The position numbers and the translations under genes are program-made. Shown here piece after piece: positions 1 through 38,959 of a DNA stretch of 64,000 bases (within the stretch, counting starts at the first letter, position 1; each line of letters opens with the position of its first letter). Under the pieces are notes generated by a model, which did no database searches, was not told where the DNA came from, and was given only the letters and a program-made list of their open reading frames with translations. The stretch covers positions 1-64,000 of the IMG/VR virus record IMGVR_UViG_3300027793_000052, one strand, 5' to 3'.

Positions 1-884
1 CTTATAGAAACCCATCCGAAGATGCCACAACCAAGATACAAGAAATAAATGAAGCCTATGAAATTTTAATAGGTAAAAAACAACCACCAAGAGAAGAAAT
101 ACCTAATAAAGGTGGTTTTGGTGGTAACCCATTTAATAATCCTTTTAATAACCCTTTTGCTGGGTTTAGAATGAAATCTAGACCCATTAGTATACTGGTT
201 AATGTAACATTAGAAGATATTTTTCACGGTGTTAACAAAAATATAAAATTTAATGTTAATAAAACTTGTAAAACATGTCAGGGTAATGGTGGTAACACCA
301 CAACATGTACACATTGTAATGGAAGAGGTGGTAAAATAGAATACCACCAAGCTATGGGTATGCAAACAATGATAATGTGTAGTCATTGTGGTGGTTCTGG
401 ACAAATGAGGGTTGATACTTGTGGTACATGTCACGGTGCTGGCATTATAAACCATATAGAAAGTTTTGATTTAAAAATACCCAAAGGACTAACCGAAGGT
501 GGTAGATTAATTATACAAGGTTTGGGGGCTGAAGGTCCTAACTTGGAAAGGGGCGACGTAGTTGTCAATTTTAATATACAACCCCACCCAAAATTCCAAT
601 TGGAAGGTTTAAATTTACATAAAACAGAAGAATTACCTTTTGTTGATATGATATTAGGTAAAGAAATTGAAATAGAAAGTTTTAGTGGTAAGTTTAAAGT
701 TAATATACCTGAATATTGTGAAAGTAACAAAGTCATAAGATTAAAAGGCCAGGGTTTAATTGACGAGGATACAGGTATTACAGGAGACTTATATGTTAAA
801 TTAACACCAAAAGTACCAAAAAATATAACAGATAGAGAAAAAGAATTGTTACAAGAACTTAGGAGCTCAATCAATTTTTCGTGA
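1..884 (+). CDS. dnaJ: DnaJ-type co-chaperone, 5'-truncated by the window edge
   Basis: Frame open from nt 3: YRNPSEDATTKIQEINEAYEIL (end of J-domain), G/F-rich linker, four CxxCxGxG zinc-finger repeats, C-terminal substrate-binding domain. Confidence 0.92.
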   Translation, partial: YRNPSEDATTKIQEINEAYEILIGKKQPPREEIPNKGGFGGNPFNNPFNNPFAGFRMKSRPISILVNVTLEDIFHGVNKNIKFNVNKTCKTCQGNGGNTTTCTHCNGRGGKIEYHQAMGMQTMIMCSHCGGSGQMRVDTCGTCHGAGIINHIESFDLKIPKGLTEGGRLIIQGLGAEGPNLERGDVVVNFNIQPHPKFQLEGLNLHKTEELPFVDMILGKEIEIESFSGKFKVNIPEYCESNKVIRLKGQGLIDEDTGITGDLYVKLTPKVPKNITDREKELLQELRSSINFS

Positions 885-3169: not shown

Positions 3170-4780
3170 ATGACAAAGTTCAAATCAAAAGCAGTGGAAA
3201 ATTTTGACGGTGGTATTTCTTATACCTTAAACCCATTGGATACATTACGTATCGTGGCAGCATCATCTATCTTTGGTGAACCATCTTATTACAGAGGTTC
3301 TCACGACAAACCATCTAACTTATCTACGTTAAAGACGTATGACGTGTTAGGTTTGTACAAAGACCCAAGTGATACAACTACTGATGTTTTCACTAAGGCT
3401 ATCGACGAGGCTTTAGACTATGACTTCAAGGCAACCCTTGAGTTAGCTAAGACTCTTCGTCACGAACACTTCATGAGGTTAAACCCAGCGGTTATCTTCA
3501 TTAGAGCGTCTCAACACCCAAAGAGGGTTGAATTTAACGAAGCAAACCCAGGTTTGATGAAACAATACGGTTTGGACATTGTTGGTCGTCCTGATGACAT
3601 CACCAACCAATTTGATTACTACATGTTCTTAAACGGTTCTAAGAATGGTTTACCATCTATCGTTAAGAGGACATGGGCTGAGAAGTTGGCGTCTTTCACC
3701 AAGTACCAAATCAAGAAATATAAGTCAAAGTCATTAATTGACTTGGTTCGTATTTCTCACGCACACTCTGAAGTTATCGATGAGTTAATGAAGACTGGTG
3801 ACGTGGCTGTTTCTGAAACTGAAACAACTTGGGAATCACTTAGGTCTCAAGGTAAGACTTGGAAGGAAATTCTTAACACAATTAAGGTTTCACACATGGC
3901 TTTACTTAGGAACTTAAGGGGTATTTTCACTGAGGTGAATGATACTGAAGTGGCTAAGAAGGTTTTAACTGACCTTAAGGCAGGTGTTAAGTTTGGTAAG
4001 CAATTCCCATTCCGTTACTACACAGCTTACAAGGAAATCGATAAGGTTTCTATAAACCACAAGGGTATGATACTTGACGCTTTACAAGAGTGTCTTGACA
4101 TCTCTATCGAAAACTTCCCTAAGTTAAAGGGTAAGGTGGCTTGTTTATCAGATAACTCTGGTTCAGCTTGGGGTACAATGACCTCTGAGTATGGTACAAC
4201 CCATATTGCTGAAATTGCTAACTTATCATCTATCATCACAGCTTTATGTTCTGATGAAGGATATGTCGGTGTCTTTGGTGAAAGATTGAGTTTAAAACCT
4301 GTTTCTAAAAGAGACGGTATTATTACTCAGTTGGAAGAAACTTGTAAGAGAGGTAAGTCTCAAGGACAATCTTGTGAACACGGTATTTGGTTATTCTTAC
4401 GTGAAGCAATCGACACTAAAACTCACTATGATACTATCTTTATTTATAGTGACATGCAGGCAGGACACGGTGGTCTTTACGGTACAAGTGTAAGCCGTGG
4501 TGACGTTCACTCTAGAGGTGGAAGTTATGTAGACGTACTTAAAATGGTACAAGAATACCGTAAGAAGGTTAACCCAAAGGTTAACGTATTCACAGTCCAA
4601 GTGGCTGGATACAACAACTCTGTTGTACCTGAAAACCTTTACAGGGGTTCAGTACTTGGGGGTTGGACTGGTAAGGAAGCCTTATACGCTAGTGAGGTAA
4701 TCAAGACTTGGGATGAAATTGAGTCTAACGACAAGGTTACATCTGAGGTTGAAGTTACTGAACAAGTAGTACAATCTTAA
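3170..4780 (+). CDS. Ro60/TROVE-domain RNA-binding protein (Rsr-like) with vWA domain
   Basis: MALLRNLR, KQFPFRYYTAY, vWA DNSGS and YSDMQ motifs; 536 aa; codon usage (AAC, TTC, CGT) suggests high expression. Confidence 0.9.
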   Translation: MTKFKSKAVENFDGGISYTLNPLDTLRIVAASSIFGEPSYYRGSHDKPSNLSTLKTYDVLGLYKDPSDTTTDVFTKAIDEALDYDFKATLELAKTLRHEHFMRLNPAVIFIRASQHPKRVEFNEANPGLMKQYGLDIVGRPDDITNQFDYYMFLNGSKNGLPSIVKRTWAEKLASFTKYQIKKYKSKSLIDLVRISHAHSEVIDELMKTGDVAVSETETTWESLRSQGKTWKEILNTIKVSHMALLRNLRGIFTEVNDTEVAKKVLTDLKAGVKFGKQFPFRYYTAYKEIDKVSINHKGMILDALQECLDISIENFPKLKGKVACLSDNSGSAWGTMTSEYGTTHIAEIANLSSIITALCSDEGYVGVFGERLSLKPVSKRDGIITQLEETCKRGKSQGQSCEHGIWLFLREAIDTKTHYDTIFIYSDMQAGHGGLYGTSVSRGDVHSRGGSYVDVLKMVQEYRKKVNPKVNVFTVQVAGYNNSVVPENLYRGSVLGGWTGKEALYASEVIKTWDEIESNDKVTSEVEVTEQVVQS

Positions 4781-5309: not shown

Positions 5310-5993
5310 ATGGAAAAAGTAACATTAGAAATTCGAGCCGCTGAGGGTGGTGAAGATTCGAAACTCCTTGTGGAGGACATGGCTGCAGTCTATCTGAAAG
5401 CAGCCAAGAATAAAGGTTTTACCGTAGAGTCCGAACATTGAAGAGACGGACTTGTTAGTATTTAGCTGACAGGTAAAGGGGTTAAGAAATACTTCCAAAA
5501 CGAAGTTGGTTGTCATAGATGGCAAAGAATTCCACCCACTGAAAAACGTGGTAGAGTACATACAAGTACAATTACAGTAGCTTTATTAGATTCCCAAAAT
5601 TATCAGGAGATAGACATCAATATGGATGAATTACGTATTGAAACAACTCGTGGTACAGGTAATGGTGGTCAACATAAGAACACAACAGATTCTTGTGTGG
5701 TTATAACCCATATACCAACAGGGATAAAAGTGGTTAGAGATGGTAGAAGTCAACATAAGAATAAGGACGAGGCTTTAAACGAAATAAAACAACGTCTAAA
5801 TGATTTATACCAACAAAACCATATGGATAAAGTTTCTAAAGAAAGAAAGGGTCAAATCGGTAGTGGTAATAGGGGTTCTGAAAAGAAACGTACCTACAAC
5901 CAAAAAATGGATTTGGTTATCGATCATGAAAGTGATAAGTCTACAAGTCTTAAACAATTCATGAAAGGTAAATTAGAACTATTAATGTGTTAA
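5310..5993 (+). CDS. Class I peptide release factor homolog (RF1/PrfH-like, no N-terminal domain) with in-frame UGA and UAG
   Basis: EIRAAEGGED, HRWQRIPPTEKRGRVHTS (PxT) and GGQ all in one frame; stops at 5439 (TGA) and 5463 (TAG). Confidence 0.8.
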
Positions 5994-6068
5994 TATTAAA
6001 GGTGGGAATTACCCACCTTTTTTGTTTTAAAGAATATTTATAAGTGTGAGACATTTAGTAGGTGAAAT

Positions 6069-6260
6069 ATGGAAACTTATGAAAGAGAAAAAATAGATAA
6101 AATATTAGAACTAATTAAGGAGTTAAACATTAAACACAATGATAAGGATTTTGTTATTAGAGAGGTTTTAAATAACGAATTAAGGGCTAACTTAACAATT
6201 AATGGACTATTTGTTTCAGACGAATTCATATCAAATTATATAAAATATGTTATCGATTGA
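6069..6260 (+). CDS. Hypothetical protein
   Basis: ORF track; co-directional in gene run. Confidence 0.5.
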   Translation: METYEREKIDKILELIKELNIKHNDKDFVIREVLNNELRANLTINGLFVSDEFISNYIKYVID

Positions 6261-10289: not shown

Positions 10290-11033
10290 ATGGAAAATAG
10301 TGAGGATATACGTAAGTTTATAAACAGAGAAATTAAGGCAAATTCAATTTTTATCATCAAACAAATAGATAAAAAAGTTGCTTATGAATTTGTTAGGGTT
10401 TACCATTATTTGGGTGATGCTAAGTTCTTTGCTAAGTTTTCCTTTGGTTTATACCATAAAGAAACCGATGAATTATTAGGGATTACCGCCTTCTCAAACC
10501 CACAAGGTAATGTGGCTTTAAAAGGTTGGTTCGGATTACCTAATACAGACCAAACAGTATTAGAACTTAGTAGACTATGTGTTAAACCATACTTAAACGG
10601 AACCAACGCAACATCTTATTTATTGGGTAACAGTATAAAACTTCTTAAGAAAGAAGGGGTTAGAGCTGTTATAACATTAGCAGATGACAGTAGACACAAT
10701 GGTAGTATATACCAAGTATGTAATTTCAAATACTACGGTCTAACAGATAAAAAATCAGACTTCTTTCATTTGAACGATAAAGGCGAATGGAAAGTCAATC
10801 CAAGAGGACCCACAAAAGATAAAAACGGTGTATGGATTAATAGAACACAAAAACACAGATATGCCTACATCATAGACGAAAACCTAAAATGTCTATACGA
10901 ACAACTTTCATATCCTAAAAAAGACGATACAAAACAATATGATTGTTGTGCTGGTACTAAAATTGTAAAAGATAAACGCTTCAATATTGACTATCCGTGC
11001 CCCAAATGTACACTTTCTGTATTGGTCGAGTGA
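10290..11033 (+). CDS. Mom-like (GNAT-fold) DNA-modification protein
   Basis: HYLG, ELSRLC, LGNSIKLL, AVITLADD, HNGSIYQVCNFKYYG pattern. Confidence 0.65.
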   Translation: MENSEDIRKFINREIKANSIFIIKQIDKKVAYEFVRVYHYLGDAKFFAKFSFGLYHKETDELLGITAFSNPQGNVALKGWFGLPNTDQTVLELSRLCVKPYLNGTNATSYLLGNSIKLLKKEGVRAVITLADDSRHNGSIYQVCNFKYYGLTDKKSDFFHLNDKGEWKVNPRGPTKDKNGVWINRTQKHRYAYIIDENLKCLYEQLSYPKKDDTKQYDCCAGTKIVKDKRFNIDYPCPKCTLSVLVE

Positions 11034-12930: not shown

Positions 12931-13061
12931 CAACAAGCCGTAGGTATGAATAAGTATATATATATATATATAATATTATTTTAATAACTTATTTAATCAT
13001 TAATTAAAATAATCATCTAAAGTTCGATAATTTTTATCGATATATAATGATATTTATTACT

Positions 13062-13895
13062 ATGAAATGGTATAAAAAAGATATTGAAACATTGATTGAA
13101 TTAATTCGTCAAGGTAACACCTATGATGAAATAGGTGTTATAATGAAAAGAAGTAGATCTTCTATTAAAGCTAAATTATTAAAATTGGGTGAGACATATA
13201 GAAAGTATTCTGAAAACAATTATTATGAAAAGGTTAATTGTAAAAATTGTGGTATAGAATTTAAATCTTTAATGTCTAATAAACAAAAATTTTGTAACCA
13301 TACATGTGCTGCAAGTTATAATAATGTAATTAGAGGTAAAAGAAGTCAAGAAACAAAAAATAAAATAAGTAAATCATTAAAAAGTAAAAAAAAGGAGAAA
13401 TATGATTTAAATCCTAAAAAATGTATGAAATGTGGTGAACATATACCATATAGTAAATGGTGTAATTATAGAAAAAATTGTGACGAATGTAACATTATTA
13501 TTCGTAAAAATATGGGTAGGATTTTAGGTCAAAAAACCTCACAAACCAAAATAAAAAGATCGAAAGACGAGATAAATTTATATGAGTTATGTAAGATGAG
13601 TTTTAACGATGTTGAACATAATAAAATAATAAGTTCTGGATGGGATGCTGATATTGTTATAAATGATTATAAAATACTTATACTATGGAATGGTCCTTGG
13701 CATTATAAACAGTTACCATTAAAAAACCATAGTTTAAATCAAGTACAAACTAGAGATAAAATAAAACAAAAATTGTTTGAAAGTTTAGGTTGGAGAGTTA
13801 TAATATTTGAAGATAGATATTACACACCATATACAGCTTTTGATTATTTAAAAAATATAATTCGGGATATATCTCCCCACTCTCATAAGGTGTAG
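13062..13895 (+). mobile_element. Putative free-standing homing endonuclease (Cys-rich DNA-binding repeats plus Vsr/PD-(D/E)xK-like C-terminus)
   Basis: CKNC...FCNHTC, WDADIV..ILILWNGPWHY, RDKIK..GWRV; inserted inside a tRNA cluster. Confidence 0.6.
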
Positions 13896-13941
13896 AAAGA
13901 GTAATTGGCAACATGTGAGTTCAACTCTCACTATCCCGACA
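13862..13941 (+). ncRNA. Atypical tRNA-like RNA with CAU anticodon loop and no normal D-arm
   Basis: 8-bp TCGGGATA/TATCCCGA stem, CTCATAA loop, GTGAG-TTCAACT-CTCAC T-arm; only ~7 nt between acceptor and anticodon arm. Confidence 0.55.
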
Positions 13942-14141: not shown

Positions 14142-14218
14142 GCCTTCGTGACGTAATTGGTAACCGTGTTAGTTTTAGAAACTAAATTTTGTGAGTTCAA
14201 ATCTCACCGAAGGCACCA
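14142..14218 (+). tRNA. tRNA-Leu(UAG), short variable loop, CCA encoded
   Basis: TTAGT-TTTAGAA-ACTAA; GCCTTCG/CGAAGGC. Confidence 0.85.
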
Positions 14219-14266
14219 AAAATTTTGATAATAAATAAACTTTTACTATATTTGTATCAACAAAAT

Positions 14267-14340
14267 GTTCCCATGGCGAAATTGGTAAACGCAACGAGTT
14301 TAAGCCTCGTATGTTCTCGGTTCAAATCCGGGTGGGAATA
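14267..14340 (+). tRNA. tRNA-Leu(UAA), short variable loop
   Basis: ACGAG-TTTAAGC-CTCGT; has its own TATATTTG promoter just upstream. Confidence 0.82.
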
Positions 14341-14556
14341 CAAAACATTGACGATATGGCGTGTAGGTGTAACTCGTTATAACACCGAGGGGAACATATG
14401 GTATACGAGAAACCATTGTGGTGTGTCTGAAGGGTCAATGTTGATATGGGGTGAGAATCTTAGTTGGCCACTAAGAAAATATGGAAGGGTGTCGCGTTAC
14501 CCAATCGGCTCAAATCCGATCCACTCCACTTTGGGTTATTTTTTGACCAAAAAATA

Positions 14557-14830
14557 ATGAGTAAGAGATACTCAAGAGTTGGGCTACTGGTCTATATCGC
14601 GTGGCAGTCTAGATGAGTGATGAGACTTTAAACTTCACCCCTTGGGTTAAAGGAGAAACATCGAACTCCTCCATTGTACGGTTGACAGGTTTTTATGTGG
14701 TAAGACACTAATGTAAACTCATAGAATTACCGATTAGAGACAAAGGGCTCTTCTGCAGGTGTTATGAGATGGTTCTCGAAACAGTCAGAGAAACCCGTTA
14801 AAATCTAATCCTCAAAGTAATCTCATTTGG
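14557..14830 (+). ncRNA. Unidentified structured RNA
   Basis: Non-coding and GC-enriched; nested stems AATGAG/CTCATT, GATTAGA/TCTAATC, GGG-CTCT/AGAG-CCC. Confidence 0.4.
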
Positions 14831-14839
14831 GGTAAAAAT

Positions 14840-14941
14840 AGTCAGGTGGCGTAATTGGTAACCGCTATAGGGTTGAGGCGTGCTAACTACCTATATAAAT
14901 TGTTTTTAAACAATGCAGGTTCGAGTCCTGTCCTGACTACA
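14840..14941 (+). ncRNA. tRNA-like RNA, AGTCAGG family copy 1 (aberrant anticodon arm)
   Basis: AGTCAGG/CCTGACT acceptor, CAGGTTCGAGTCCTG T-arm, no 7-nt anticodon loop. Confidence 0.65.
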
Positions 14942-15057
14942 AAAATAAAGACATATGGAATATATATTAGGATTTTTAATTGGTATAAGTATTTTTATTA
15001 TTTTTCATAAACCTATTATTAGAGCTTTAGAAAAATTAATCGACATTATCCAAGAAT

Positions 15058-15160
15058 AGTCAGGTGGTGAAATTGGTAGCCACAGCATATAAGACCATGG
15101 GCGTTGTGTTGAAACCTACTGGGGATTAGATTTACAGGTTCGAGTCCTGTCCTGACTACA
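15058..15160 (+). ncRNA. tRNA-like RNA, AGTCAGG family copy 2
   Basis: Same acceptor and T-arm, unrelated central region. Confidence 0.65.
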
Positions 15161-15384
15161 CGAGTCGAGTTGTGTTCGACTAATGTGCTCCCGCATGATG
15201 GAAGTGGTGTCACACCCACAGGGACCTGAGCCGATTACTTGAATCTAAGTCGGTTGGTTGGTGTACCAGTAACAGGAGGAAGTTAACACACAAGTCCTAA
15301 CCCCTCACGTAAGTGGGTTGCCGCTGAAGCCTCGAGAAGCTATTCGGTATTGGGGACAGTCAGAAATGATTGGGCGAAAATTAT

Positions 15385-15461
15385 AGTCAGGTGGTAGAAT
15401 TGTGATTACACCTTGGGACGAATGTCTAGGAGATACAGGTTCGAATCCTGTCCTGACTACA
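15385..15461 (+). ncRNA. tRNA-like RNA, AGTCAGG family copy 3
   Basis: Same acceptor and T-arm; central hairpin with 4-nt loop. Confidence 0.6.
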
Positions 15462-15492: not shown

Positions 15493-15975
15493 ATGGTACT
15501 AATACTTAACGCTGACTACACACCATTAACTGTGGCTAACTTTAAAAGAGCCTACAGATTAGTGTATAAAGGTAAGGCAGAAATAGTGGTTTCTCATGGT
15601 AAAGTTGATGCTGGTATAATATTGGATAAGCCTTCCATAATTAGATTAATTAAATATGTTTACTTTCCATATAAAAAAGTAACCTTATCAAGGTATAACA
15701 TTTATAGAAGGGATGAACATAAGTGTTTATATTGTGGATCCAAAGATAATTTAACGTTAGACCATGTTATACCAAGAAGTAAGGGTGGGCCAAACAGTTG
15801 GACAAACTTGGTGACATGTTGTATGAGATGTAATATGTTAAAGGGTGATAGAACACCTGATGAGGCAGGAATGGTATTATCACATAAACCATTTACACCT
15901 AATTATTTATATTTTATAAACAAAATGCATAAAATACATGAAGAATGGAAACCTTATTTAATGGATGATAAATAA
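15493..15975 (+). CDS. HNH endonuclease (McrA-like)
   Basis: CLYCG..LTLDHVIPRSKGG..WTNLVTCCMRCN; AGGAGG upstream. Confidence 0.85.
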   Translation: MVLILNADYTPLTVANFKRAYRLVYKGKAEIVVSHGKVDAGIILDKPSIIRLIKYVYFPYKKVTLSRYNIYRRDEHKCLYCGSKDNLTLDHVIPRSKGGPNSWTNLVTCCMRCNMLKGDRTPDEAGMVLSHKPFTPNYLYFINKMHKIHEEWKPYLMDDK

Positions 15976-17617: not shown

Positions 17618-17706
17618 GGTGTTAGAGTCGGATATTGGTTAGCCGAGCTTGTCTGTGAAACAAGTGTTCTTTAGTGAACGTGCGGGTTCAATCCCCGTCT
17701 ATCACC
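17618..17706 (+). tRNA. tRNA-His(GUG)
   Basis: CTTGT-CTGTGAA-ACAAG; G-1:C73 pair; enlarged variable region. Confidence 0.8.
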
Positions 17707-17713
17707 CAAATAC

Positions 17714-21509: not shown

Positions 21510-21600
21510 GGGTCTGTGGTGTGAGTGGTTTAAACCACCTGTCTGCAAAACAGGGATGACAATTAATTTTGTTACGTCAGTTCGAATCTGACCAGACCCT
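21510..21600 (+). tRNA. tRNA-Cys(GCA) with long variable arm
   Basis: CCTGT-CTGCAAA-ACAGG; U73. Confidence 0.82.
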
Positions 21601-21612
21601 CTAAAAAATAAA

Positions 21613-25887: not shown

Positions 25888-26697
25888 ATGCAAAAATGGT
25901 CAACATATGAAATAAATTATTTAAAAGAAAATTATGAAAATAAAGGTAGTGAATATTGTTCAAAACAATTAAATAGAAGTTTAAACTCTGTTAGGAATAA
26001 AGTTAGAAAACTTAAACTATCCATTAATAAAGAACTTAAATCTGAAATACAATCTAAAAACGGGTCAAAATATGAAAAAATGGTATTCTCCTTTGAAAAC
26101 CCCCAAGATTTATATATAATGGGATTTTTATGGGCGGACGGTTATCTTCACGATACATTTAATAGATTGGAGTTATATACCACTACTGAAGATTTTAAAA
26201 CCATAGAATGGTTATTTGATGATAATAAATGGTCTATTTCACATAGAGAAAGGGTGAATAAAAAACCATCAACAACATTAGGATTGTATCAAAAAAATGT
26301 TTGTGAAAATTTTAGAGAGTATGGTTATACAGGGAAAAGTTTATATTCCCCTAATTTTTTACACAAAATACCAGAAAACATAATACATTATTTTTTTAGG
26401 GGTTTTTTTGACGGTGATGGATGTTTTTATGTTAGTAAAGATAATAAACAAAAACAATGTTATTTGGCCGGTAGTTATGAACAAGATTGGTCATGGGTTG
26501 AAGATAGGCTTAAAAAATTGAATATTGATTATACCATAAAAAGAAAAACACAAAAAGGTGGTAAGGAAAAATATTCTATTGTTTACATTAAAAAATCATA
26601 TATAAAGAATTTCGGTTTTTTTATATATGAAAATTATGATATAGATAATATTGGTTTACCTAGAAAATATAATAAATTTTTACAAATAATAAATTAA
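25888..26697 (+). mobile_element. Free-standing LAGLIDADG homing endonuclease
   Basis: YIMGFLWADG and FFRGFFDGDG motifs. Confidence 0.85.
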
Positions 26698-30868: not shown

Positions 30869-31259
30869 GGGGGTGACTTGGAATTGATTGGCTACATTAG
30901 TTATTGTAAAAGCATGTCGAGACTTGTTTGTAGGCTCGTTAAACCAACAATCAAAATTTTAAATGGCGACATTTTCGCAGACGCTACTGTAGGTCACTTT
31001 GTGACTGAAGGTGCAGAGGTTGTAGCCTAATTAGATTAGGGTACACAACGGGGTTGGATTACCTAGGAACAGAAGTCCAAAAAAGGGTGTTACCACTACC
31101 ACAAAAGGGTAAAGTCAAACATGGAATGTGTCAACTAAGTCCATGGGAGAACTAAAAGATGAAGTTGTATATTTTGGGTGGTTAGAAAACCACATCCTAA
31201 ACATGTAGAAGACTTTAATTCATTAGAACAAGACGGCGGTTCGACCCCGCTCACCTCCA
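30869..31259 (+). ncRNA. ssrA: tmRNA
   Basis: GGGGGTG/CACCTCC-A acceptor with G3-U70, GCATGTCGAG after helix 2, GACGGCGGTTCGACCCCGC T-arm; tag ORF 30965-31030. Confidence 0.92.
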
Positions 31260-31292
31260 CTTTAGAAATTTATTAACCTAAAAATCGAAAAA

Positions 31293-37415: not shown

Positions 37416-38078
37416 ATGAAAAAAGTCATAAGATTAAATGAAAATGATATTGAAAAATTGGTTAAAAAAATCATCAGAGAAGGTGAAACCAGTTACATGA
37501 ATGATCACGAAGCTAATACATATATGTTTTGGCAAAACCTTGAAACCATTAAACATGCCGCAGAGGAAATTTTGGAGATGGACAGGGAAAAAATAAATGA
37601 AATTTTAGCAGATGGTCATGCTTGGGCCATGGACCATATTGCGACTTCAGCTGATGATGTTGAAGAAGTATATCATTTTTTGGAAGGTCGTGAAGATGAT
37701 TATGAAAAACATGAACACAAGGAAGAAGAAGAGGAGGAGGAAGAATATGGGCAATATATGGAATCCATCAAAGGTAGAATAATTCATGCTGACGAATTTG
37801 GCTTCACAGAGTTATTACCAATAAATGAAGGTAAAGGTAAAGGGGCTTGTGCAAACAGAGATTTAAATAAACCTTGGTTAACACCTGATGGACCTAAAAA
37901 ACGTTCTGTTTGTGTTAAAAACGCTTCAGGAAATGTGGTTAAAGTTAATTTTGGTGACCCTAATATGAGAATTAAAAAATCAAACCCTGAAAGAAGAAAA
38001 TCTTTTAGAGCTAGACATAAATGTGAGAATCCAGGACCAAAGTGGCGTGCACGCTATTGGTCGTGTAAGTTTTGGTGA
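37416..38078 (+). CDS. Conserved phage protein with leader motif
   Basis: LVKKIIRE; VNFGDPNMRIKKSNPERRKSFRARHKC..RYWSC. Confidence 0.6.
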   Translation: MKKVIRLNENDIEKLVKKIIREGETSYMNDHEANTYMFWQNLETIKHAAEEILEMDREKINEILADGHAWAMDHIATSADDVEEVYHFLEGREDDYEKHEHKEEEEEEEEYGQYMESIKGRIIHADEFGFTELLPINEGKGKGACANRDLNKPWLTPDGPKKRSVCVKNASGNVVKVNFGDPNMRIKKSNPERRKSFRARHKCENPGPKWRARYWSCKFW

Positions 38079-38959
38079 TACAACCCAATACCCCTATAAG
38101 ATTTTAACTTACCCTTAATAACTTTAGTTATATTTGACCTATCTAGATTATTTTCTTTACAAAATTTAGATAGGTCATTTTTTAATATATCTATGACTAA
38201 TTTTTTACCCATATCATAAAGTTTCACCATTTCAACATTTAAAACATCGTATTCTTGACATTTTGTTAAAATTTCATCATCAGTTTGTTGGGTGTCTAAA
38301 AAACAATAATAACCATTATGTCTTTTAATATTTTTAGTATGACCTCTTAGTGTGTTAACAAAAAAATGTATTTTCAAATTATTTTGTTGACAAAAATCCC
38401 CCAAATTTTTAATCCTCAAAATATTATTTTTTCCATCAACTAAAATCCAACTTTTTGATTTGTTTTTATTTTGTTCAATTAATCTGGGCCCGTTTTTTTG
38501 ACTTATCTTATTTTTATGTTCTTCGGTAAATTTTTTACCTTTGTTGTATCCTATGAATTTGACTTTAATTTTTTCCTTATAATCATTACTGTTTAAAGTT
38601 TTTTGCCATTTTTCAGATTTTTTTAAACCTTCAGAAATTCTATTAGATAAATCTTCAGATATTATTCTATTTTTCTGACCACCTCCTAAAACATTATACC
38701 CATTAGGTGTTAGTGAGTTATGTTCATTTATCCAATAGATTTCCTTTTTATCTAACTCATCAATCGATGAAGCCTCATCAATCACTTCCCATTCAAAATT
38801 ATCTATACCATATTTTTTTATTGCATTTAAAAATGGTCTATCATTTTTATCATTTTTCGATTCTTTTAGGTGTCCACTAATTCTTTTATCTAAACCCCTT
38901 ATGGTCTGACCTATGTAAACTTTCCCATTTATTTTATTTTTAACCATATAAATTACCAT
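38054..38959 (-). mobile_element. GIY-YIG homing endonuclease with NUMOD-like repeats
   Basis: VIYMVKNKINGKVYIGQT...GYNV; KGKKFTEEHKNKIS. Confidence 0.88.

Follow-up and report, generated by a model that had tools for sequence, protein, structure and literature searches.

Three tRNA-like RNAs with a common leucine-tRNA-type body and unrelated, anticodon-less centres in a contig of an uncultured phage

Mimicry of tRNA by non-coding RNAs is already known from tmRNA, the Y RNAs and a few bacterial motifs, in each of which the family consists of one conserved RNA. The bacterial Ro60 protein works with Y RNAs that contain a tRNA-like module, and a YrlA-type RNA of M. smegmatis is cut by RNase P and gains CCA (PMC4201824). 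In YrlA, a true tRNA-like module with T arm, D arm and Levitt pair is joined to a specific module at the place of the anticodon stem; its arms are circularly permuted (V-T-AS-D), with both ends in the Ro-binding stem and a loop closing the acceptor stem. Some jumbo phages carry TROVE proteins, the cellular counterparts of which work with a tRNA-like RNA (PMC7824862). Species 1 RNA (rnaC) of phage T4 is a stable RNA of unknown function that is encoded among the phage tRNA genes, beside a homing endonuclease gene, and has a T arm and an acceptor-like stem at its end and a long structured interior. In the engineered tRNA scaffold, the RNA of interest is put in the place of the anticodon arm, with the tRNA body providing processing and nuclease resistance and the insert being the payload. 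In tmRNA, an acceptor stem and a T arm are kept while the anticodon is missing, and a large insert separates the D region from the T arm; its identity is that of alanine (G3:U70), its D region is reduced, and it contains a tag reading frame and four pseudoknots.

The window analysed here, 64,000 nucleotides long, comes from a giant freshwater phage; it is the first 64 kb of a 318-kb IMG/VR contig and is AT-rich (30% G+C) and phage-like. ARAGORN called 22 tRNAs in it, two more were found with Rfam, and a tmRNA lies at 30869-31262. A Shine-Dalgarno sequence was found in 3 of its 46 genes, and this near-absence fits a host of the Bacteroidota type. Three tRNA-like units, each followed at its 3' end by CA, lie downstream of two ordinary leucine tRNA genes (Table 1), and the kind represented by these two genes is likely to be the ancestral kind of the units.

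Table 1. Features in and around the block with the three tRNA-like units; positions are those of the window.
Feature	Position	Strand	Description
TROVE (Ro60-like) protein gene	3170-4777		Pfam E 5e-9; PDB TROVE chains E 1e-8
tRNA-Leu(UAG) and short tRNA-Leu(UAA)	14142-14340	+	ordinary; Leu-type D arms; A73-C-A-rich trailer as in the copies
tRNA-Leu(UAA)	14267-14340	+	upstream bound of the block with the three copies
Gap A	14341-14839	+	non-coding, from tRNA-Leu(UAA) to copy 1; part 14363-14530 conserved in a relative (L257)
Copy 1	14840-14939	+	100 nt; acceptor AGTCAGG/CCTGACT, A73, D stem GCG/CGC
Copy 1 centre			stem ATAGG/CCTAT around 18 nt, and a second hairpin ATTGTTT..AAACAAT
Copy 1 T arm			GCAGG-TTCGAGT-CCTGT
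34-codon ORF	14955-15059	+	hydrophobic; between copies 1 and 2; without Pfam family
Copy 2	15058-15158	+	101 nt; acceptor and T arm as copy 1; D stem GTG/CAC
Copy 2 centre			50 nt, two weak hairpins
gapC RNA	15169-15378	+	~205 nt, no ORF, multi-helix fold; bracketed by copies 2 and 3
Copy 3	15385-15459	+	75 nt, tRNA-sized; D stem GTA/TAC; D loop without GG pair
Copy 3 centre			CCTTGGGACGAATGTCTAGG and AGAT; 8-10-nt loop containing GACGAATG
HNH endonuclease gene	15493-15975	+	immediately downstream of copy 3

All three copies start with AGTCAGGTGG and end with CAGGTTCGA(G/A)TCCTGTCCTGACTA, and they have in common the 7-bp acceptor stem AGTCAGG/CCTGACT, A73, the T arm and a D arm of the leucine type. 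Changes between the D stems are compensatory, the acceptor and T stems are identical, and the centres, of 25-50 nt, are mutually unrelated and lack an anticodon loop. The window contains the 24-mer CAGGTTCGARTCCTGTCCTGACTA exactly three times, and 100 shuffles do not contain it at all. The initial annotation, made from sequence alone, had described three tRNA-like RNAs with identical acceptor and T-arm sequences and differing, anticodon-less centres within 14840-15461, and both the description and the range held as written. Its proposed check with tRNA finders gave no ARAGORN call at any of the three copies, whereas the Rfam tRNA model (RF00005) scored all of them, at 41.3, 34.5 and 48.3 bits for copies 1, 2 and 3, above its gathering score of 29; the alignments cover the acceptor, D and T arms and leave 16, 41 and 14 nt, respectively, unaligned at the anticodon loop or arm. 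Of the features expected of a canonical tRNA, the 7-bp acceptor stem, D arm, TTCRANY T loop and discriminator are present, but the 5-bp anticodon stem and the 7-nt loop with U33 and an anticodon are not.

A covariance model built from 40 relatives and copy 3 (R1) scored copies 1, 2 and 3 at 59.7, 58.6 and 73.8 bits, and none of the ordinary tRNAs of the window exceeded 41.7. We defined membership of the scaffold family by an acceptor AGTCAGG/CCTGACT or a compensated variant of it, a Leu-type D arm, a T arm of the form (A/G)CAGG-TTCGARU-CCUG(U/C), a centre that is not that of a tRNA and a high R1 score, and the three copies meet these criteria, the R1 score included. Folding of the single copies by minimum free energy was uninformative (z of -1.3, +0.3 and -0.9), and complementarity of the three centres in antisense to the 64 kb showed no excess over shuffles. 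Searches of the locus with Rfam at gathering and permissive thresholds, and of 20 family loci, recognised the units as tRNA only and the centres as nothing; weak matches of skipping-rope and SpF41 on copy 3 were set aside, reflecting the tRNA-like shape only.

Canonical introns that splice to give normal tRNAs had been named by the initial annotation as the observation that would refute it, and this was not borne out. An intron would be expected to restore a normal anticodon arm with a consistent anticodon upon removal of an insert at the fixed site 37/38. With introns allowed, ARAGORN distributed the family over 24 anticodon classes with insertion sites from 29 to 41, without a common anticodon or site, and gave the window copies implausible anticodons with A34, reading them as Val(AAC), Leu(AAG) and Ile(AAT) with 'introns' of 11, 10 and 2 nt. 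Bacterial machinery for short protein-spliced tRNA introns is, to our knowledge, not described.

Of the described systems, we rank the YrlA Y RNAs as the closest in logic. The family shares with YrlA the combination of a tRNA-like module and a second module at the place of the anticodon stem, and both occur in phages encoding TROVE proteins. The order of the arms is, however, that of a normal tRNA rather than permuted, and the second module is hypervariable whereas that of YrlA is conserved; the YrlA model of Rfam gave nothing on the three units, its sole weak match, at 19.5 bits, spanning two ordinary tRNAs. T4 rnaC is the closest in setting, with its place among phage tRNA genes and its structured interior. 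Unlike the units, rnaC has no recognisable D arm and stays below the Rfam tRNA threshold (a 17.5-bit tRNA-Sec match is its only one); it shares no sequence with them, and it is one conserved RNA, not a frame that accepts hundreds of different inserts. The engineered tRNA scaffold is the closest in design, the role of the body and the payload being presumed for the family, but it is a laboratory construct, whereas the family would be its equivalent in nature, uses a Leu-type class II frame and has the variable arm replaced too. tmRNA is set apart by the U3:A70 pair of the family, its full Leu-type D arm and its inserts of down to 20 nt; the three copies carry this U3:A70 pair, and neither ARAGORN nor Rfam calls a tmRNA at them. 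With canonical class II tRNA-Leu the family shares the D arm GGCGGAAU(U)GGUAGACGC, A73, A15:U48, the flanks and the genomic slot, but it has no 5-bp anticodon stem with 7-nt loop, no common anticodon, and a distinct and nearly fixed acceptor stem and T arm.

The slot is apparent from the relatives of the window phage, where the gene order is Gln-Phe-Thr-Val-Leu(UAG)-Leu-HNH and the HNH gene is immediately preceded by a canonical class II tRNA-Leu. In the window, the same slot holds a non-coding block of ~930 bp with the 3' part of gap A, copy 1, the 34-codon ORF, copy 2, gapC and copy 3, so that it is copy 3 that stands directly 5' of the HNH gene. Two segments of gap A, 14682-14832 and 14790-14839, have matches in two other contigs (L230 and L105), where they lie upstream of family members. 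A homologue of copy 2 with 90% identity lies in another contig (L135); its flanks are unrelated, and its second hairpin differs by one compensatory change. The relatives of the window phage have expanded sets of tRNA-Leu paralogues adjoining homing endonuclease genes, and the homing endonuclease genes around the tRNA clusters of the window are of the HNH, GIY-YIG and LAGLIDADG types. The HNH gene was considered as a partner of the units and rejected, its relatives (67-76% identity) adjoining canonical tRNA-Leu genes with no family member nearby.

The survey of relatives suggested by the initial annotation revealed a large family in uncultured viral contigs, with more than 330 occurrences in more than 250 contigs, both of them lower bounds. 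At least 120 viral contigs carry the exact 3' 24-mer, with at least 163 copies and up to 6 per locus; full units measure 70 to 191 nt. In these matches the 5' half AGTCAGGTGGCGGAATGGTAGACGC, in the form AGTCAGG-TG-GCGGAAT(T)GGTAGACGC, is conserved, though it was absent from the search pattern. A pattern of D and T arms gave 120 matches, most of them with the AGTCAGG/CCTGACT acceptor, and a pattern of the Leu-type D arm only yielded 161 unique genes: the AGTCAGG acceptor is present in 112, another 20 are canonical tRNA-Leu genes of 81-85 nt with other acceptors and T arms, and ~29 are further non-canonical genes. Acceptors changed on both strands were recovered with the D and T or the D-arm patterns (AGTCCTG/CAGGACT, TGTGTGG/CCACACA, GGTGTAG/CTACACC and GACAAGG/CCTTGTC). 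All searches were anchored on conserved sequence, and the invariance of the acceptor and the T arm is therefore partly built in. Members from the D-arm-only search for which ARAGORN gave no usable call all have CAGGTTCGAATCCTG as their T arm, or a variant that differs from it by one base, together with varied, compensated acceptors. Since members have this T arm in common despite their compensated acceptors, and canonical tRNA-Leu genes differ in it, the non-canonical genes form one lineage and are not the product of repeated decay of tRNA-Leu genes. That the units belong to a large family of phage non-coding RNAs, monophyletic and descended from a class II leucine tRNA, is one part of our main reading, to which we would give a probability of about 0.5.

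In 252 family loci we counted 333 members and 585 ordinary tRNAs; at a distance of no more than 500 nt, 120 of the members have another member and 93 have an ordinary tRNA. A recurrent protein neighbour was not found: when the ORFs within 4 kb were clustered, the largest cluster was present at 12 of 120 loci. No member was found among the cultured phages of INPHARED with copy 3 and one 70-nt member as queries, and only 20 matches were found in 185,579 species genomes, every one of them on contigs of metagenome-assembled genomes (MAGs), mostly labelled Chitinophagia, Flavobacterium, Saprospirales or similar and coming from lakes and streams. These matches are likely to be mis-binned phage DNA, and the AGTCAGG acceptor stem was found in no host tRNA of these 185,579 genomes. 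Most of the sources are probably freshwater phages of Bacteroidota-like hosts. The family was not found described in the literature searched, with the sequence itself included among the queries.

The constant part retains the tertiary framework of a tRNA. In 244 unique members, U8 is present in 236, A14 in 220 and A73 in 228, the other 16 having G73, and the G13-A22 pair, G18G19 and a standard T loop are also kept. The Levitt pair A15:U48 is found in 202 of the 244, and G15 is paired with C48 in 6 of the 9 cases in which it occurs. This covariation of 15 with 48 only makes sense for a folded L-shape. The D arm is the near-universal D arm of bacterial tRNA-Leu. Bacterial LeuRS, that of E. coli included, relies on A73 and the D-arm/elbow region and ignores the anticodon, and a minimal tRNA-Leu without anticodon and variable arms can be charged. 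We used as the tRNA-Leu identity set A73, G10-C25, G13-A22, A14, A15:U48 and G18G19, with no anticodon required. All three copies have A73, and copies 1 and 2 share the Leu-type D arm with the family consensus, whereas the missing D-loop GG of copy 3 and the G73 of the 16 members weaken a strict leucine identity. Leucylation is plausible because what LeuRS needs, A73 and the D-arm/elbow, is retained, but this is inferred and there are no charging data.

The flanks are also those of tRNAs, with T at -1 in 82% of the members, A at -2 in 74% and C at +1 (position 74) in 98%, followed by an A-rich trailer. The same pattern is seen at the 585 ordinary tRNAs of the family loci and at the tRNAs of the window, and no promoter-like signal was found at a fixed distance from the members. 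The units therefore sit in a tRNA processing context, from which cleavage, trimming and CCA completion are inferred. In light of these data it is very likely that the units are tRNA-Leu-derived, tRNA-shaped non-coding RNAs under selection at the RNA level.

The 244 unique elements fall into ~200 centre classes of 20-130 nt, and in a fixed cloverleaf frame 47% of the centres form one helix, 40% two and 10% three, these helices beginning 0-2 nt past the D stem and stopping ~2 nt short of the T stem. As a group, they fold better than dinucleotide shuffles (mean z -0.60, p 6e-16). No conserved anticodon arm was apparent in an alignment of the 41 tRNA-sized members, and short motifs common to several centre classes were at best weakly supported, one example being GAGGTA, present in 14 of 157 classes where 2.4 would be expected. 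Among 68 pairs of homologous centres from different contigs, the median identity is 92%, compared with an identity of 0.55 and 0.52 in their 54-nt flanks and 0.54 at random. In classes found in several contigs, the stems covary, with no change in loops and linkers: in one class, three compensatory pairs enclose a 9-nt loop that is invariant, as is an adjacent single strand of 11 nt; another has a compensated long-range helix pointing to a pseudoknot; and in a third CACCUCCCCAAGGUUGAG is unchanged while the D arm is replaced. Near-identical centres in unrelated flanks, with covarying stems, indicate that the units are discrete and constrained in unrelated surroundings. The centres are likely to be functional modules, although no target was found for any of them. 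The simplest mechanism for their spread, which we infer, would be exchange by recombination within the two constant halves of ~25 nt, and such exchange would also keep the halves uniform between phages.

These results bear on the remaining claims of the initial annotation. That the top half is under selection held, given its conservation across hundreds of phage contigs and the covariation of a tertiary pair, but which partner of the top half matters, whether RNase P, the CCA enzyme, LeuRS or EF-Tu, was conjecture and there are still no data on it. That the bottom half is variable also held, with the qualification that it appears to be constrained cargo rather than free filler, its loops being fixed and its stems covarying; the suggestion that it serves as a decoy is kept below as a rival reading which we do not favour. 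A third suggestion, that the units act as processing punctuation for the intervening RNAs, has received indirect support from the gapC RNA, which was found in three independent contigs at 10-40 nt 3' of a member, each time of a member with a different centre. gapC is ~90% identical in the two other contigs (L161 and L407), shows two compensatory pairs among the three sequences and has no match in Rfam. Its position directly 3' of members fits tRNA-like units that set the ends of neighbouring RNAs.

The reading that we favour is that of a tRNA-Leu-derived scaffold, matured like a tRNA and possibly leucylated, which presents exchangeable structured modules to specific targets. It is inferred, in the absence of data on expression, processing or charging and of any known target, and we hold it with no more confidence than a probability of roughly 0.35-0.5 conveys. 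The units would be transcribed along with the tRNA cluster of the + strand and excised in a tRNA-like manner, with RNase P cutting at U-1/A+1, trimming of the 3' end and completion of CCA on the encoded C74, as predicted from the flanks. That the product adopts the L-shape of a tRNA, with its acceptor, T arm, Leu-type D arm and A15:U48 Levitt pair, is shown by conservation and covariation, and it may be leucylated, as A73 and the D-arm/elbow are kept and LeuRS does not need the anticodon. In the place of the anticodon and variable arms it carries an idiosyncratic module of one to three helices, sometimes with a predicted pseudoknot or extra T-loop hairpin, and this module is taken as the specific functional part because its loops are conserved and its stems covary. 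The constant halves would provide stability and processing and may also serve as homology arms of ~25 nt for module swaps between co-infecting phages, such swapping being inferred because identical centres occur in unrelated flanks. The modules would most likely bind particular macromolecules of the host or the phage as aptamer, decoy or tether, with no target known. Besides the lack of a regular protein neighbour and of an antisense excess within the window, two further points count against the favoured reading: ~200 module classes are hard to square with as many specific targets, and a near-invariant helix sequence is unusual if shape alone matters.

The main rival, which we consider unlikely, is that the units are decoys or sponges for tRNA-directed defences or toxins of the host. 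A nuclease or modifying toxin directed at class II tRNAs would bind the conserved tRNA-Leu body, but with its altered lower half the unit could not be cleaved or would be a dead-end competitor; the centres would owe their diversity to an arms race. This reading draws on the D arm, which copies that of nearly all bacterial tRNA-Leu, and on the expanded tRNA-Leu paralogues beside homing endonuclease genes in the relatives of the window phage. It has been reported that defences cut the variable loop of class II tRNA-Tyr, which is relieved by overexpression of phage tRNA, and that phage tRNA loci are amplified in response to defences, the amplification being due to a homing endonuclease (PMC13096335). 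However, a pure decoy needs merely an uncleavable centre, yet loops and linkers are conserved, stems covary and identical centres are present in unrelated genomes, and the sequence-specific conservation of the centre loops is left unexplained. The AGTCAGG acceptor was, moreover, found in no host tRNA, all 20 matches in the species genomes being on MAG contigs, and these hosts are not known to have a tRNA-Leu-specific defence, which also counts against a decoy.

A minor rival, also unlikely, is that the units are Y-RNA-like partners of Ro60/TROVE, the tRNA-like half corresponding to the YrlA module and the centre docking on the Ro60 ring of the phage or the host. The window encodes a TROVE-domain protein, and in five other contigs (L273, L066, L180, L266 and L275) family members and a TROVE gene share a strand and are within 1-5.4 kb of each other; three of these (L273, L066 and L180) meet the location criterion of YrlA, within 4 kb of the Ro60 gene and on the same strand. 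The loop of copy 3 also contains GACGAATG, which fits the proposed Ro-binding motif GNCGAAN0-1G (PMC4201824). This motif is, however, not enriched in the family (6 of 244 members against 5 expected), and copy 3 is the only one of the window copies to have it. At most of 53 other TROVE loci no family member lies closer than 10 kb, a TROVE gene is present at just 2 of ~250 family loci, and the window copies are 10 kb away from theirs. The co-location is confounded because both features are found in tRNA-rich regions. The topology of YrlA, which ends in the position of the anticodon stem, is the opposite of that of the units, and its Rfam model does not match them.

It is very unlikely that the units act as DNA; in that case the constant halves would be attachment sites, or sites that a homing endonuclease or recombinase recognises or uses as homology, and their likeness to tRNA would be a relic. 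The sharp boundaries of the units, identical units in unrelated flanks and the frequency of homing endonuclease genes around these tRNA clusters would agree with such an element. Against it stand the signs of selection on RNA, namely compensated acceptor and D stems and the covarying 15:48 pair, as well as the flanks, which are like those of tRNA processing sites, the lack of a consistent endonuclease or integrase neighbour, and the relatives of the HNH gene, which occur without the element. An attachment site would in addition require a host tRNA with the sequence, and none was found in the species genomes.

Decoding tRNAs with short introns or expanded anticodon loops, or decaying tRNA-Leu pseudogenes, are all but excluded: Rfam scores above the tRNA threshold, a nearly canonical class with a CUUAAGU loop and a variable-arm hairpin (L075, L085 and L118) and Leu as the commonest ARAGORN call (30 of 187) speak for them, but the intron analysis given above does not, and pseudogenes would not keep an invariant top half or centres of 92% identity with covarying stems in unrelated genomes.

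The scaffold reading, which we continue to prefer, also has a bolder form that remains possible, in which a constant tRNA-shaped handle for a host machine, be it RNase P, the CCA-adding enzyme, LeuRS/EF-Tu or Ro60-PNPase, would be combined with a library of exchangeable specificity domains. These domains would dock on diverse targets in the host or in rival phages, and the cassettes would be moved by recombination in the constant halves. If this were true, the family would resemble in its logic, at the level of RNA, repeat-plus-spacer or handle-plus-guide systems, and it would serve host takeover or counter-defence.

What is new compared with the known tRNA mimics is one tRNA-Leu-derived frame with hundreds of individually conserved structured inserts and a hypervariable, cassette-like centre, spread over very different uncultured phages and often present as several members per genome. 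Standard tRNA finders skip the members or mislabel them as tRNAs with odd anticodons or introns. If they are expressed, phages have a large layer of small RNAs that is still unannotated. The family would also be a natural forerunner of the tRNA scaffolds used in RNA engineering, supply a ready collection of small autonomous RNA folds and offer a tractable route to the decades-old question of the 'extra' stable RNAs of phage tRNA clusters.

Next to the family members, tRNA-Leu-derived RNAs with constant acceptor, D and T arms, we identified another RNA, gapC, which in three contigs (the window, L161 and L407) immediately follows a family member on its 3' side and for which no ORF and no Rfam match was found. 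A T-run is present at the gapC end in two of the three contigs, whereas in the window gapC instead adjoins copy 3, a further family member. Some of the family centres, the variable inserts between D and T arms, contain a second T-arm-like hairpin, formed by a stem and a GTTCGAnTC loop; the centres from L273 and L024 are homologous and the stem of this hairpin is fully swapped between them, GGG/CCC versus CCC/GGG.

Positions of RNA and protein features in the window and in other viral contigs (L numbers)
Feature	Contig	Position	Strand	Remark
gapC RNA, ~205 nt	window	15169-15378	+	conserved, structured
gapC RNA	L161	2915-3125		conserved
gapC RNA	L407	about 5870-6090	-	conserved
Centre with second T-arm-like hairpin	L273	9010-9135
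Same	L024	about 484-643
Same	L034, L042, L063, L090, L096
Expanded tRNA-like genes, type I D arm	L286	54-181, 307-436
Same	L295	20323-20461
Same	L297	14077-14208
Same	L311	11788-11918
Same	L314	7648-7789
Element, 77 nt	window	13863-13939	+	7-bp acceptor-like stem, T arm
tRNA-Leu paralogue array	L255	808-1202
Same	L257	3121-3965
tRNA-His, 89 nt	window	17620-17708	+	long hairpin-forming variable arm
tRNA-Cys, 92 nt	window	21510-21601	+	long hairpin-forming variable arm
tmRNA, phage-encoded	window	30869-31262	+	Rfam 82 bits
TROVE/Ro60-like protein, 536 aa	window	3170-4780	+
DnaJ-like protein	window	171-884	+	DnaJ_C and zinc-finger domain; J domain region absent from ORF
Mom-family protein	window	10290-11033	+	DNA modification family
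Likely homing endonuclease (282-aa ORF)	window	13047-13895	+
Likely homing endonuclease (HNH gene)	window	15493-15975	+
Likely homing endonuclease	window	25888-26697	+
Likely homing endonuclease	window	38054-38959	-

Further expanded tRNA-like genes were observed, with ordinary type I D arms, differing acceptor stems and inserts of ~60 nt in the anticodon region. Those of L295, L297 and L314 have in common the insert motif ..TTATAATTATTCTCA..AATGAAGC..TTACTTCATA.., which points to another class of inserts carried by tRNAs, distinct from the family centres. The 77-nt element of the window has neither D arm nor anticodon arm and was called by neither ARAGORN nor Rfam; the 282-aa ORF ends within it. 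Long variable arms are unusual for tRNA-His and tRNA-Cys identities. A near-threshold match to the Rfam 'freshwater-1' RNA (70.1 bits against a gathering threshold of 72) was seen at 4124-4186 (+) of L016, in a tRNA cluster also holding four family members.

The TROVE protein has 55 relatives in the viral collection (38-100% identity), nearly all within tRNA-rich regions of large phage contigs; its nearest solved chains are 9l5y and 9kop, whose sole annotation is 'TROVE domain-containing protein'. The DnaJ-like and Mom-family proteins are ordinary jumbo-phage accessories.

The likely homing endonucleases, in or near the window tRNA regions, comprise HNH, LAGLIDADG and GIY-YIG genes and a zinc-finger ORF without Pfam assignment. 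Of the 46 ORFs checked, just three have a Shine-Dalgarno-like sequence; two of these are the HNH and LAGLIDADG genes, which suggests that both are of foreign origin. In relatives of the window phage (L255 and L257), the HNH gene is immediately preceded by four to six tRNA-Leu paralogues, which differ widely in length (70-85 nt) and have anticodons UAA, UAG, CAA, GAG and AAG. The locus upstream of the HNH gene appears to be a hot spot of tRNA-Leu duplication.
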